DNA of 64,000 bases from Utricularia gibba (GCA_002189035.1 CM007989.1:8246001-8310000), one strand, 5' to 3'; positions 57,872 through 64,000 are shown, numbered from the stretch's first letter. The notes: generated by a model not told the origin, from the sequence alone. Made by a program: numbers and translations.

Positions 57872-58141
57872 ATGCGGACATGGGGTTCTGCCAGCTGGTG
57901 CTGCCCGCCGCCGCTGCTTCTCACCAAACCCGTCGACGAACACTATGACGCGGCTCCGAAGACGCCGACCGCGGGTGAGTCGAGGATACCCCATATCCTG
58001 CCGTGTCCTCCGCCGCCGAAGAAGCGGCGAGTGACGTTCTCCGCTACGTGCCGTGCGGATAACCTGGAATTTTTTCACCTGCCGGAGGACCTCGAATCTA
58101 TCTTCTTCTGCCGCTCAACTGCTAGGCTCGGTTCCGGCTGA
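57872..58141 (+). CDS. SIAMESE-RELATED (SMR) CDK inhibitor; start codon uncertain
   Basis: PKTP, RIPHILPCPPPPKK and FFHLPEDLESIF match SMR motifs; intronless, 89 aa. Confidence 0.8.
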   Translation: MRTWGSASWCCPPPLLLTKPVDEHYDAAPKTPTAGESRIPHILPCPPPPKKRRVTFSATCRADNLEFFHLPEDLESIFFCRSTARLGSG

Positions 58142-59652
58142 AGACAGGTGTTCCTGTGACTGTTGTTGTTGTAGTAATCACGTCCTAATGGGGTTTTCTT
58201 CTTAAGCATGTAGATTAGTTTAAGTAACTGCGTTGTACACCAAGGGAAACCCGTACTTTACCCATTTCTCCATCTTTACGACAACAACGTAACTGTCTTT
58301 TGAGATGAGTTCAACGAAAAAAAATAACAGGAAGAAGGTGAGAGTTTGAAGTTGGGTGTTAAAGAGTCAGAAGTGTGTCTGTGACTCGGCCAGCATGAAG
58401 AGAGTAACCGTGCGAAGTGCATTAACAGAAAGCAGTTAAAACCCAAGTGACTCGCAGTAAAAAAAGCCTTTTTTATCTCATCTTCAAGATCACTTTCCAT
58501 CCATGATCTTTCGTTTTTGACCAATGGGTATTGAGTTTTACCAACCTTCGCTCTCCCTTTTTGTTAAAACTAATCCTGTCACTTACCAAATGCAGGTTTC
58601 ACCTCTGCATACTCTAATAATTCACATCATCACTCTAAGTATACGCAAAAATGGACTGTGAAATATTAAGATAAGTTGTAACAAAGGCAAACCCGTGGTG
58701 GGGGGCGGGGGAGTTGGTCGGTGAAACAGTGAAGGAACGTGAATTGGTTCGTGGTTTGAAGAAATGCAAGAGTTCTGTTCCTGGGCCTGTGAAGTGTCTG
58801 AGCAGAGTGCCTCGTAATTTGGTTCACCGGGTGGCAGCCACACGGGCAATAGCATAAAGGGGAATCCAATGTGGAGTTCTTTATCATAGCTCAGAGTTCA
58901 TGCATAAACATCCAGCACAACACTTGCAATTACTAGAAACTGCGTTCACATACTAAAACATGGAGGGAGACAGAGAGCCCAACGAGGGAGATGAATTATG
59001 CAGATGAAGGTGTAAAAGTAGCGTCGTTCCACGCCCTGGTGACTCCGTCCAATCCCAGAAATCACTGAGCCTATGGGTGCTGGAAGAAACATGAGAAGTG
59101 CCAACAATGCGTTGCGGATACTGGGCATAAAGGGAGCATCACTAGTGCTACAATCTCGCCGATCGCGAAGTTTAACAGTGGACGCCATGCACATCGGCAA
59201 ACGTGCATAACTCCGCCGCCCAGATTCAAACGACTGCCCGCCGGAGTTTTATATTCTACTCTTGCATAAAAAAAACTGACAAAATGTTGAAATGATCCCA
59301 AAAAAACCAACCTTGCCTTCAACAAATAGAGTAACACTGCTTTGATTCTTGCGGTTAATAATTTTTGTAATAAAGTAAAATACGGTCAATGTAAGAGCCC
59401 CATTTGCTGTTATTTACTTTTTTAAGGGAAACCGGTAAAAGTTAATGCAGAAGAATCACCGTAAGCAAATTGAATGGCGTTCTCTTCCCCTGTTCCGATT
59501 CTTCAAATGTGATCCTCAGGATACATTTTCCGCTTGGGTTCAGAACTTTCGTCCTCCCCACTTGTTCGCTCGATCCTGAGGCTGAATCCCTCATCTCCGT
59601 GTTTTGGAACTCCCAGATTGGTCTTCCACCTTCGCTTCAATTCCGCGTTTCG

Positions 59653-60114
59653 ATGACTTCTGTAAGTACCCAAAATGAAGCATTGTTTTCTTGATTCGTC
59701 ATTCGATTGCTGCCGTTTTTGAAAAAACAAGACGCGGTTTGAATTTCGATCGGCGGTGAAGATTTCTTCTTTGGTTAATCGAAATTTCAACTGTCTTTTT
59801 TTTGGGATCCGGCAGCAGGAAAAGGGCCGCCCGCTGCCCAAGTTCGGGGAATGGGACGTAAACAACCCGGCATCGGCAGATGGATTCACGGTGATATTCG
59901 CCAAGGCGAGGGACGATAAGAAATCCAAGGGCGCGGCTGGCGAAGGCGGCCCTCCGTCGAAGGATGGCGTTTCCCCGTCACAAGATCACCAGGATTCTCC
60001 CCCGAAGGTACCCTCAACTCCCTTCTCTACCCTCATCGGTAAAACTCTGCCGTGACGGTGATCATGTCGCAACCGTATACGTGCTTGCAGAAAAAATGGC
60101 TTTGCTTTTTCTAG
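59653..60114 (+). CDS. Small NOI / RIN4-like protein (AvrRpt2 cleavage-site family), 3 exons
   Basis: Exons 59653-59661, 59816-60007, 60091-60114: MTS-QEKGRPLPKFGEWDVNNPASADGFTVIFAKARDDKK...KKWLCFF with C-terminal Cys. Confidence 0.9.
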
Positions 60115-60603
60115 GGCACCGCGGGTGGCAAATGTGGAAATAGAGAACAAAAATCAAATGCCTAATGGCTCTCCTGTGCTGACTCCTCATTTTCTAAAAA
60201 TAAATCAAACATTTCTTTTGCATCACACTCAACCGTCGTCCATGGAATCACCGCCGTGATTTTCCGTTTCATCTCAGGTAAAAAAGGATCAAGTAGTTAA
60301 AAAGGTAAATTTGTGTGTCAGCCTCAGGAGGTAGGGATTCATTCCCTCCTTCAGTATCAGAGACTTTTGTCTCACTCTCAGACGTGTGAACAATGGACCC
60401 AACCCTCCAAAAGTCTCGCCTTCACCACCATAACTCCTCCGCAGTCATAGGGCAATGGCCAGCCATATCCGCAGCAACCTGCGGCGGAGTCAAAGCTTAG
60501 GACTTTCTTTCCTCTAGGCTTGATTTCGGAAGCTTTGTGTTATCCCAATGGAGAACACTGTATATATATCCTCAACTGGTTTTTTCTTCCTCTTGCATCT
60601 GAG

Positions 60604-62080
60604 ATGAGCATGATTCTCCCGGTCTCTCCTTCGCTCTGCCGCCTGTTCTTCTTCTGGGTTCCACTGGCTTCCTCGATGCTGCTGGTGTCATCTTCCTTGC
60701 TTGCAGACCCTCAGTCTATGGCGGGGCGGTGAGTTGTCTATTCTTGCATGTCGAAGGGTAAAATCAAGCAGTAGGGATGGGTAGTATGATAGCGTCAACA
60801 GATTGTTGAGAAATTGAATGCTGAGTTGCCTGAATTTAGGGATGATTGGAATGGGAGTAGAAGAAATTTAGGATACAGATACCGTTCCTGCTACACCGGC
60901 AACGCCATCGACGACTGTTGGCGCTGTGATCCCAACTGGGAATCCAACCGCCGCCGTCTCGCGGACTGCGCCGTCGGTTTCGGCAAGAATGCCGTAGGTG
61001 GCCGAGATGGTGGCCTCTACGTCGTTACCGACCCCTCCGACGATGATCCGGTGAACCCACGACAGGGAACTCTCCGCCATGCTGTCATCCAGGACAAACC
61101 CCTATGGATTATCTTCAAGAAGGACATGACCATACGCCTGAAACAACAGCTCCTAGTCGGCTCTTTCAAAACCATCGACGGCCGTGGCGCGAACGTCCAC
61201 ATCGGCGCCGGCAGCCCCTGCATCACCATCCACTACGCGAGGAATGTGATCATCCATGGAATCCACATCCACGACTGCGTCAGCGCGGGAAACACCATCA
61301 TCAGGGATTCCCCTGCCCATGCCGGGATGTGGAGAATGTCGGACGGGGACGGTAAACTTCGACCGTGTTAACCTTTTCTCAAAACACTAAATCATGGATC
61401 TGGTTTTTGAATAGGTATCGGCATTTTCGGTGGGAAGAACATATGGATCGATCACTGCTCCCTGTCAAGCTGCCAAGATGGACTGATAGACGCCATCCAT
61501 GGATCTACAGACATCACAATTTCCAACAGTTACTTCACTCACCACGACAAGGTGATGCTGCTGGGACACAGCGACGACTACCTTCAAGACAAGAACATGC
61601 GTGTCACCATTGCCTTCAACCATTTCGGAGAGGGGTTGGTGCAAAGGATGCCCAGATGCAGACACGGCGTCTTCCATGTCGTGAACAACGACTACACCCA
61701 CTGGGAAATGTACGCCATCGGTGGAAGCGCGTCGCCGACAATATACAGCCAGGGGAACCGCTTTCTTGCTCCTAACACTCGATTTGACAAAGAGGTATGC
61801 AGTGCTAATCCGATGCAGTTTATAAGGTTTCTCTAATGGGTTTTTATGGAACTCGAAGGTGACGAAGCACGAGAACGCGCCGGAGAGCGAGTGGATGCGG
61901 TGGGATTGGAGATCGGAGGGTGACTTGATGCTCAACGGCGCTTATTTCCGGCAGTCAGGGGTGGCGATGGGGTCCCCTTACTCGAGGGCATCTAGCGTAA
62001 GTGCTCGGCCTTGTTCGTTGGTCGCCTCCATCACCTCCGACGCCGGCGTACTCAACTGTCTTAAGGGCTCACCCTGCTAA
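60604..62080 (+). CDS. Pectate lyase (PL1/PLL), 4 exons
   Basis: Signal-peptide exon, [87 protein letters not shown]. Confidence 0.93.
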
Positions 62081-62275
62081 AGCCTTGCAAAGCCGATAAG
62101 TAAAAAAAAGATGTAATTTTGAAGTTTGGGGTAACAATGTTGTCTCAATGACTGCAAATTCTGCCTACAACATAAGGAAAAGTGCACTGGTTTTTGACAA
62201 TTTTGGTGCCTAAAATGCAGAATATGTCTCAGTCACAGAAAGCAATCAGCAGTAGCTGCCTGCACGGCTCTGGGA

Positions 62276-63394
62276 TTAAAAGGCACACTGCCCTGCTCGA
62301 ATTGGTATCTCCATGAGAGCCTCTGGGTGAAACTTCATGATCTCATCCATAATCCTACCCCGGAGTTCTTTCTCTCCGATGCAGTCATTGACATCTACGA
62401 GCATTCTGTCCATTGCCGGACGAAAATAAGCGTTTTTGAAGCCTTTGTGGAAGTAAGGATGCTGAAGAGCCGCCTCGGCCGTAATCCTTTTTGATGGATT
62501 CAGAGCAAGCAAATTAGATAAGAGATCAATCGCCAGTGGGTCAGCTTCCGGGAACAGAGAAGCAAATCTGGCTTCCTCTGCATGACTGGCTGATTTCACG
62601 AGCATCAGCACCTCAGGGTGGTCTATGAAATAATCCGTCTTGGATTCGAAGCCGATGGTTTCCAGTATGAGTTCCAGTTGATGTCTTGTGTTTTTTCCTG
62701 GGAAAAGCGGCCTTCTACCGAGAAGCTCTCCGAATATGCACCCTGCTGACCAGACATCAATGGCGGCATTGTAGTTCCGGCAGCTAAGCAGAAGCTCCGG
62801 CGCCCGATACCTCCTTGTTACAACATAATCTGTCTTCAACACCCCTGTCCCAGACGCAGTTATCGCCTGCCCCATATCACCGATTTTCAGATGACAATTG
62901 CTGTTGATGAATATGTTCGCCGGCTTCAAGTCCCTGTGAAGAACATTGGCAGAGTGCAGATACGCCAAGCCACTCAGTATCTGATACATGATGCATTCAC
63001 AGTGGGCTTCGCGCAGCTGGAGAGGGGACCGGATGATGCTATCGAGATCGGTGTCCATCAGCTCGTAGACCATATAAACATCATTGAAATCTGCCGGGCT
63101 CCCCGGAATCATCACTTCCTTCAGCGATATCAGATTCACGTGACTCAGATTCCTCAACAAGATGATCTCCCTTACAATCTGGGCAGCATCCTCCGGACAT
63201 TCGAACACGCCGGCAATCTTCTTGATAGCCACCTTTTCTCCGGTTTCTTGGTTGATGAATGAAGCCACCACCCCGAATGATCCTTGGCCGATTATCTTCA
63301 ACGGAGCGTATTTGGCGTCGACTTCGAAAGATGGCCCGTTTTTGTGCGTGTACACCTTCTTCATCGGCACCACGTAGTACTGGTCCATCTCCAT
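62276..63394 (-). CDS. Intronless atypical MAP kinase (TDY activation loop)
   Basis: IGQGSFGVV, VAIKKI, REIILL, VYELMDTDL, LHRDLKPANI, GDMG, KTDYVVTRRYRAPELLL, IDVWSAGCIFGELLGRRPLFPG. First ATG at 63394. Confidence 0.88.
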   Translation of the reverse strand: MEMDQYYVVPMKKVYTHKNGPSFEVDAKYAPLKIIGQGSFGVVASFINQETGEKVAIKKIAGVFECPEDAAQIVREIILLRNLSHVNLISLKEVMIPGSPADFNDVYMVYELMDTDLDSIIRSPLQLREAHCECIMYQILSGLAYLHSANVLHRDLKPANIFINSNCHLKIGDMGQAITASGTGVLKTDYVVTRRYRAPELLLSCRNYNAAIDVWSAGCIFGELLGRRPLFPGKNTRHQLELILETIGFESKTDYFIDHPEVLMLVKSASHAEEARFASLFPEADPLAIDLLSNLLALNPSKRITAEAALQHPYFHKGFKNAYFRPAMDRMLVDVNDCIGEKELRGRIMDEIMKFHPEALMEIPIRAGQCAF

Positions 63395-63784
63395 CTCGAT
63401 GTCTGCTCTGCTCTGATGAAGAAGAAGAATAAGAAGAAGATTGAGAGCGACGATCCAAAAATATGATGGTGGCGTTAGGGAATTATGGGAACTAAATAAT
63501 TCCTTAATAAGCGCATCAGGTAAGATTACAGATACGAAAGGGATTTTTTTTGGGAGTTCTGCTTGGATTCTTAAATACTTTCTATCCAATCAAAAAAGGC
63601 CACGTTATATATTTGCAGATGCACCTCGCCGCACTGGAATATTTCTGTTAGAGTGCGAATCTCGTTCCCGCCCAATTACTGTTACGTCAATTTACAAAAG
63701 TACCCATGAAAATCCTTCGTCTGATTTTCGAGTCGCTGCCAGCCGTCGGATCACAAGCCAGAGTAAGAGGCTATCCGTTGAACA

Positions 63785-63830
63785 GAAACCCTAGCCTCTG
63801 TCTCAGCTAACTGCCGCAAAGTAAGAAATT
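63785..63830 (+). promoter_or_regulatory. Probable 5' UTR exon and first donor of a gene running off the window
   Basis: Telo-box AAACCCTA followed by AAA|GTAAGA donor consensus; no coding sequence recognised. Confidence 0.3.
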
Positions 63831-64000
63831 TCAAATGTTTGAAAAAGGACGATGGAACGCAGCCTCCGAAGGGGATGACCGTTTGTTCATCTTTCCGGAA
63901 TCCTACGTGCGGTTCCAATTCTGAAAATTTACTGCGGTTTTTATGTGGATGAGAATTTGGGAGGGATTCGAGTGCCCGAAAGCTTATTCGTCTAGGATTT

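Follow-up and report, generated by a model that had tools for sequence, protein, structure and literature searches.

A 64,000-nucleotide stretch of the Utricularia gibba genome (GCA_002189035.1, CM007989.1:8246001-8310000), which we call the window throughout and from whose first nucleotide all positions are counted, contains an intronless reading frame for a MAP kinase (MAPK) that joins a short scaffold to a T-D-Y activation motif. This locus raises the questions of which group of plant MAPKs the gene descends from, whether selection has maintained it, and whether its product is still a kinase under the usual control. Our comparisons point to group C, the most conserved and least variable of the plant MAPK groups, as the likely source, and suggest that the gene is on balance probably a lineage-restricted, still catalytic paralogue with altered regulation.

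The minus strand of positions 62276-63394 holds a single uninterrupted 372-codon frame for a complete MAP kinase (ORF listing and minus-strand sequence), in agreement with the original prediction of an intronless MAPK whose frame is fully open. The open frame runs from 63589 to 62276 on the minus strand; its first in-frame ATG is at 63394, in a good start context (G at -3 and +4), and the TAA stop codon at 62276-62278 ends a product of 372 amino acids. The catalytic residues are all kept in the translation (GQGSFG loop, K58, E76, H153-R154-D155, N160, D173 and APE), including the catalytic Lys, helix-C Glu and HRD that had been expected to survive, and the TDY, DMG, TRRY and FHKGFKNAYF sequences were likewise found where they had been predicted (Table 1). 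A scan for bacterial-type promoters and terminators found nothing, a result that is irrelevant to a plant gene.

Table 1. Features of the MAPK frame, with positions in the window.
Feature	Position	Strand	Basis
Intronless MAP kinase coding sequence, 372 aa	62276..63394	-	ORF, translation, Pfam, structure matches, predicted fold
Catalytic Lys58 (VAIKK), kept	63221..63223	-	Translation; invariant alignment column
Gln72, helix C; Arg in 124/139 diverse MAPKs and at least 98% of group C	63179..63181	-	Alignments
HRD catalytic-loop motif His153-Arg154-Asp155, kept	62930..62938	-	Translation, alignments
D-M-G (D173-M174-G175) replacing D-F-G; Met in only 2/139 diverse MAPK representatives	62870..62878	-	Translation, alignments
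Ile178; Arg (DFGLAR) in 134/139 MAPKs	62861..62863	-	Alignments
T-D-Y dual-phosphorylation motif Thr188-Asp189-Tyr190; 12 residues from DMG, group C spacing	62825..62833	-	Translation, spacings
T-R-R-Y (T193-R-R-Y196) replacing T-R-W-Y; Arg195 in 1/139 representatives	62807..62818	-	Translation, alignments
FHKGFKNAYF, residues 315-324; position of group C 'SxLYDPxxxP' stretch	62423..62452	-	Alignments
TATA-like 'tatataa', 211 nt 5' of ATG, then CT-rich leader; possible promoter	63605..63611	-	Inspection only

By its translation and predicted structure, the product is a MAP kinase, with a kinase domain, a T-x-Y motif and a MAPK fold that includes the MAPK insert and the L16 extension. The Pfam Pkinase domain covers residues 30-315 (3e-64), and the best solved relatives, Arabidopsis MPK4 (2e-92) and MPK6, are collinear with residues 19-358. 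An AlphaFold model built on 54 aligned sequences (mean pLDDT 88.5, pTM 0.89) is weak only at the termini and the activation loop, and places helices at 341-354 and 357-361 after the kinase domain as the C-terminal, MAPK-specific L16 helix. The top 50 matches in a fold search with this model were all MAPKs, with AtMPK4 first (TM 0.87/0.91).

The frame is not an assembly artefact, as a DNA contig from a separate study (run X4) covers 58001-64000 unbroken at approximately 99% identity (56 substitutions and 10 gaps), and the indel sites listed for it (58324, 59089, 59185, 63556 and 63801) all lie outside the ORF. Upstream of the ATG, the frame stays open for 65 codons without an in-frame ATG (63395-63589, minus strand) and includes a hydrophobic stretch, YFWIVALNLLLILLL. 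A short upstream ORF of 13 codons begins near 63516. Positions 63395-63589 are probably leader sequence, and may alternatively provide an N-terminal extension via an upstream exon.

Group assignment and the missing intron

The similarity searches consistently ranked group C (Arabidopsis MPK1/2/7/14 and tobacco NTF3, which act downstream of MKK3) above every other group. Among the best 120 matches, all named sequences that could be checked carried group C-type names (MPK7, NTF3 and MPK1; 366-385 bits), while an A-like and a group D representative scored 318 and 278 bits in a protein search with the MAPK product. The same order was obtained by tblastn back onto the window (358 bits for group C, 301 for A-like and 258-271 for group D) and by BLOSUM62 sums over the whole protein (873 for C, 770 for A/B-like and 682 for D). 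When the protein was divided into six regions, group C scored best in four and was at most 9 units from the best in the other two; group D was lowest in five and fell below group C in all six.

Lengths within the protein gave a concordant picture. Four of them equal the group C mode, namely KY..IG (5), DxG..TxY (12), HPY..HPE (41) and the 172 residues after APE; the 12-residue spacer is found in 111/113 scored group C matches and the 41-residue spacer in 96 of the 104 scored. In group D the loop spacer is 15-18 and APE is followed by 337-416 residues in the main set (maximum 525), whereas A/B-like sequences have spacers of 11 (loop) and 42 (HPY..HPE). The KY..IG length is 6 in the group A-like P0127 and 5, as in the query, in P0124. 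With group C the ORF further shares its overall length, a short tail that ends just after HPEA, the lack of a canonical CD motif and a complete catalytic core. With group D (e.g., Arabidopsis MPK8/9/15-20) it shares TDY, the lack of a CD motif and the residues S39, A211 and A306, but it lacks that group's 15-18 spacer, 180-350-residue C-terminal extension, 'VA' after TxY, N-terminal FFTEY..RY motif and multi-intron structure. A tblastn search of the window downstream of the MAPK stop codon found no remnant of a group D C-terminal extension.

Phylogeny with the plant MPK groups, which had been put forward as a check on the original prediction, did not settle on one position. In a 63-row tree the ORF takes a basal position in the seed-plant group C clade (SH-aLRT 91), and in a tree without the other long branches it moves beside group D (support 55), a placement that was flagged as long branches meeting. 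AU tests rejected neither placement (p 0.34 with D and 0.39 with C), leaving membership of the group C clade without statistical support, and the 17 residue columns diagnostic for C versus D are divided into six in the C state, six in the D state and five in neither. Since the trees disagree on its position and the AU tests do not discriminate, we judged the group on the length characters and on similarity, which are less liable to converge, and on these the MAPK ORF is likely to be of group C origin (MPK1/2/7/14 - NTF3). A clustering with sequences from Macleaya (P0265), Ginkgo (P0210) and 'Phyllobates' (P0236) was set aside as long-branch attraction, the three being only 39-41% identical to the query.

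We consider it very improbable that the gene instead arose from a group D (TDY) MAPK as a truncated retrocopy, or from group A/B. A group D source would account for TDY together with the GxGSxG loop, for the resemblance of 'TAE.AL..PYF.KG' to the group D sequence 'TAEEALADPYFKGL', for the six diagnostic columns in the D state, and for the tree that places the ORF beside D with no rejection by the AU test. It is at odds with the regional and tblastn scores, the spacer of 12, 'VV' instead of 'VA' after TxY, 'HPY' instead of 'DPY', an N-terminal FEVDAKYAPLK of the TEY type and the absence of any downstream trace of the extension, and the join with D is the one flagged as long branches meeting. 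Derivation from group A/B is opposed by the loop and HPY..HPE spacers of those groups, by the CD motif that the query is missing and, to the extent that P0124 allows, by the KY..IG length of P0127.

If the gene derives from group C, its TDY motif would be convergent. TEY is found in 111/113 scored group C matches, and a 40-species survey reported no novel activation-loop motif in this group (PMC4363184). TDY is nevertheless only one base change (E to D) away, and it is also seen in an MPK7 of Populus nigra (isoform X2, P0059, whose cluster numbers 23 sequences), which combines T-D-Y with a short group C scaffold and the 12-residue spacer. P0059 is otherwise canonical (DFG, TRWY and LAR), whereas the U. 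gibba ORF differs further at 19 near-invariant positions. The short, group A-C-like scaffold of the original prediction therefore stands, with four lengths that match group C, while its use of TDY as a group D signature does not, group D being the least similar group.

Three other degenerate sequences deserve mention in their own right. P0236 (XP_073525816.1, labelled Phyllobates terribilis) is a degenerate MAPK in a frog assembly that groups with a divergent Macleaya cordata MAPK (SH-aLRT 94) and sits inside a clade otherwise made up of plant group C sequences alone; it is likely to be plant contamination of the frog assembly or a case of long-branch attraction. P0265 (M. cordata) and P0210 (Ginkgo biloba) are singleton group C-like MAPKs with degraded activation loops that have no TxY. 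Such sequences suggest that seed plants have repeatedly given rise to fast-evolving offshoots of group C.

In poplar and Arabidopsis, the coding sequence of group C genes is split into two exons by a single intron (PMC1574314), and the same structure, with the intron near codon 143-148, was observed at each of four group C loci from the Lamiales (Erythranthe, Paulownia, Primulina and Penstemon). With a single intron in group C, the intronless state of the U. gibba ORF amounts to the loss of one intron. Seven intronless genes were recorded among 589 plant MAPKs surveyed (PMC4363184), and these sporadic cases include PvMPK7-2, PaMPK7-1 and PaMPK2, several of the genes having group C-type names (Mohanta et al., 2015, PMC4363184); the likeness is by description only, and nothing indicates that they form a clade with the ORF. 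The genes flanking the four Lamiales loci are unrelated to those of the window (flanks of 10 kb compared), so the ORF appears to lie at a new, non-syntenic place, which fits a dispersed duplicate such as a retrocopy. No poly(A) remnant was found in the 195 nt after the stop codon, and no target-site duplication among the repeats of 61900-64000; such scars could have decayed. Retroposition is thus plausible but unproven. The retrogene of the original prediction keeps the missing group C intron in its favour, yet its inference was overstated, given that only one intron is involved, intronless MAPKs are already known and no scars were seen.

Divergence, selection and expression

The MAPK product has no close relative in any collection searched. 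Its best matches among 5.8 billion proteins are 49-52% identical, and a search of 1.84 billion cluster representatives returned nothing closer. Searching with the C-terminal 147 amino acids for orthologue fragments found none, with nothing closer than approximately 52% identity overall. P0293, 71% identical over 38 residues, was rejected as an orthologue, as it is a marine eukaryote exon (TARA metagenomes) that matches only the conserved subdomain XI. An exact-sequence look-up found no record of the protein; two other intronless ORFs of the window are likewise absent, so this look-up shows merely that the proteins of this genome are not in the collection.

The ORF is approximately 50% identical to group C proteins, whose members are typically 85-90% identical to each other, and its terminal branch measures 1.8-2.1 substitutions/site in our trees, where the median is 0.10-0.12, which makes it some 15 times the normal length. 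The CDC5 exon in this window shows 81-85% identity to its counterparts in many Lamiales and 78-80% to those in rosids, from which it follows that the divergence is specific to the MAPK gene and that the genome overall has not diverged to an unusual degree. The gene is therefore as fast-diverged as had been predicted, and the proposed orthologue search, extended over full-length, cluster-representative and C-terminal fragment searches, agrees with the prediction. The further suggestion of a lineage-specific signalling component may hold with respect to lineage, no orthologue having been found in these collections; no RNA was found (see below), and we regard the gene as an oddity and not yet as a new signalling component.

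Selection was gauged against four Lamiales group C coding sequences, with codons mapped residue by residue and exon by exon. The dN/dS comparison planned in the original prediction gave pN of 0.33 per site and pS of 0.75-0.86; the synonymous sites are saturated, and no numerical omega can be given. Differences at the three codon positions were 0.37/0.30/0.62. Of the columns with at least 98% conservation among 115 group C proteins, the ORF retains 87%, as against 37, 19, 29 and 8% in column classes of increasing variability. When neutral drift was simulated at 0.37 substitutions/site, a stop-free frame survived with a frequency of 5e-5 (5/100,000, indels not counted). The contrast between 87% and 8-37% retention, together with this low neutral survival, argues for purifying selection on the fold and catalytic core for most of the history of the gene. 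Judged from these sequence comparisons, the kinase fold was maintained by selection while most of the divergence built up, and so were all the catalytic residues. In the same simulation, a frame survives 0.02-0.05 neutral substitutions/site with a probability of 0.2-0.5, and a recent gene death would thus be invisible. The open frame stressed in the original prediction consequently reflects past selection, as the simulation and conservation gradient indicate, while no orthologue was found with which to gauge present constraint.

The outcome of the expression check that had been proposed was negative. Sampled words of the MAPK ORF gave 0.00 in all seven RNA-type runs of the species, and no contig fell on 62200-63900 in the three RNA runs placed on the window, where Logan contigs show presence, not absence, and the RNA tissues are unspecified. 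The same three runs yielded GT..AG-spliced contigs on the neighbouring NOI and pectate lyase genes, joints which establish that these runs are truly RNA. In the reading favoured below, expression of the ORF would probably be narrow or conditional, no transcript having been seen.

These data bear on the alternative that the gene is a silent relic, a long-functional duplicate that is no longer expressed and has just begun to decay, and whose frame stays open only until the first disabling mutation. We consider this unlikely, although it is the main rival reading. It would explain why neighbours on both sides are covered by RNA contigs while the ORF is not, and why this singleton has no orthologue; the 19 replacements at positions conserved at 98% or more, among them Phe of DFG, Trp of TRWY and two Arg, would be a sign of relaxed constraint, and, given the simulated survival at low divergence, a recent death would leave no mark on the frame. 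On the other hand, every catalytic residue is intact, the conservation gradient is steep, and between two accessions approximately 1% apart no listed indel falls in the ORF, compared with five in the flanking non-coding DNA. The good start context and the TATA-like element and CT-rich leader 5' of the ORF also speak against a relic, and the RNA evidence has the limits of contigs and tissues given above.

The activation switch and docking surface

At 19 positions that are near-invariant in group C (at least 98% in 115 MAPKs), the U. gibba ORF has a different residue. Eleven of these replacements occur in at least 7 of 139 other eukaryotic MAPK representatives; the eight that are rare among the 139 are R72Q, Q125L, L162F, F174M, L176Q, R178I, M187K and W195R, and six of the eight lie in the activation segment or at the helix-C Arg. 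Among invariant columns, changes were not significantly enriched in the activation segment (5/19 versus 14/121, Fisher p 0.14). Compared with group C, TEY, DFG, TRWY and LAR have become TDY, DMG, TRRY and QAI, Arg has given way to Gln72, and a basic patch stands in place of 'LYDP'.

We take residue 72 in helix C to be the Arg65 position of ERK2, and residue 178, the Arg of DFGLAR, to be the position of a phospho-Thr ligand in ERK2. In phosphorylated ERK2, the Arg of DFGLAR and the helix-C arginines bind the phospho-Thr. The DFG Phe belongs to the regulatory spine, and both this residue and the Trp of TRWY are structurally important, for which reason the catalytic competence of the product is not assured.

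The original prediction also drew attention to a missing CD docking site. The canonical motif is indeed absent from the ORF (alignments), but this is no novelty, as groups C and D generally lack the (LH)DxxDE(P)xC motif (PMC5451138). What is new is that, at residues 315-324, the last acidic residue of the group C 'LYDP' has been replaced and the patch is basic (alignments). Taken singly, features of the ORF have precedents among the sequences compared, TDY having been seen in group C, DMG in a further MAPK and the lack of introns in other MAPK genes; their combination, on a branch approximately 15-fold longer than normal, is without precedent in the same comparisons.

Replacements of this kind raise the possibility that the gene, expressed somewhere, encodes a non-catalytic MAPK-like protein in which DMG, QAI and TRRY abolish activation or catalysis, and which would act as a scaffold, decoy or competitor for MKKs, phosphatases or substrates. 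The concentration of rare replacements in the activation segment and helix C is what such a protein might display, and the degraded TxY loops of Macleaya P0265 and Ginkgo P0210 show that drift of this type recurs in the family. Against this, the VAIK Lys, HRD Asp and DFG Asp, one or other of which is missing from a typical pseudokinase, are all present in the ORF. Met in place of the DFG Phe and Arg in place of the TRWY Trp are each found in another MAPK representative, a decoy would depend on the docking patch, which has changed as well, and no RNA contig lies on the ORF. We therefore regard a non-catalytic role as improbable.

The reading that we favour is that of a rapidly evolved paralogue of the short, TEY-type plant MAPKs, most likely of group C descent, which would have lost the single intron of that group and come to lie at a non-syntenic site in a Lamiales genome. 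Its product is probably still a working Ser/Thr kinase that could be phosphorylated on Thr188 and Tyr190. The switch and docking surface would have been rewritten through DFG to DMG, LAR to QAI, Arg72 to Gln, M to K before TxY, TEY to TDY, TRWY to TRRY and the basic patch, with the change of LAR to QAI presumably removing the Arg that binds phospho-Thr in ERK2. MKK3 interacts with and activates Arabidopsis MPK1/2/7/14 (PMC5177658). A changed dependence on MKK3, the usual activator of group C, and on D-motif partners is a potential consequence of these replacements, and the product may or may not have kept MKK3 as a partner.

A more far-reaching version, which we consider fairly improbable, would make the gene a lineage-specific 'atypical' MAPK whose phospho-switch was remodelled as a unit (loss of two Arg that bind phospho-Thr, a Met within the regulatory spine, a P+1 loop with one more Arg, TDY in place of TEY and a docking patch of opposite charge). 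Such a kinase would no longer rely on phosphorylation by MKK3 or other MKKs and would be auto-activating, constitutively active or controlled by new partners, in a narrow tissue such as pollen.

A group C-like copy in which the catalytic residues have been selected while the switch and docking patch have been rewritten would offer a natural experiment on which parts of the MAPK switch can change with the kinase kept. If expressed, it is a candidate for a kinase that has escaped from the MKK3 module; if silent, it is a well-preserved duplicate on its way out, and an example of TDY convergence outside group D.

Genomic neighbourhood

The window is gene-dense plant DNA that includes genes for a MATE transporter, a U-box protein, an AHL protein, CDC5, an actin-like protein and a cytosine methylase; no other MAPK copies were found within it. 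An 89-codon ORF at 57872-58141 (plus strand), rich in Pro and basic residues (PPPPKKRR...EFFHLPEDLE), resembles the small SIAMESE-related CDK inhibitors and has no Pfam match. A small NOI/RIN4-type gene follows at 59440-60110 (plus strand). Its exon at 59813-60004 matches Pfam AvrRpt-cleavage (1.7e-22), and the gene is transcribed and spliced in RNA run X13, with an 83-nt GT..AG intron (60005-60089).

The MAPK gene stands tail to tail with a pectate lyase gene at 60580-62080 (plus strand; Pfam Pectate_lyase_4), with 195 nt between the two stop codons. The pectate lyase gene contains a 111-nt GT..AG intron (60727-60839) and is transcribed in RNA run X9. Segments of it (61239-61275 and 61671-61730) have further matches in other contigs of DNA run X4, an indication that paralogous pectate lyase copies are present elsewhere in the genome. 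On the other side, approximately 515 nt separate the MAPK start codon from a transcribed unit with its start near 63910, which is possibly divergent from the MAPK gene; RNA contigs of X9 (1197 nt, depth 15) and X10 begin at 63910-63936 and run past the end of the window.
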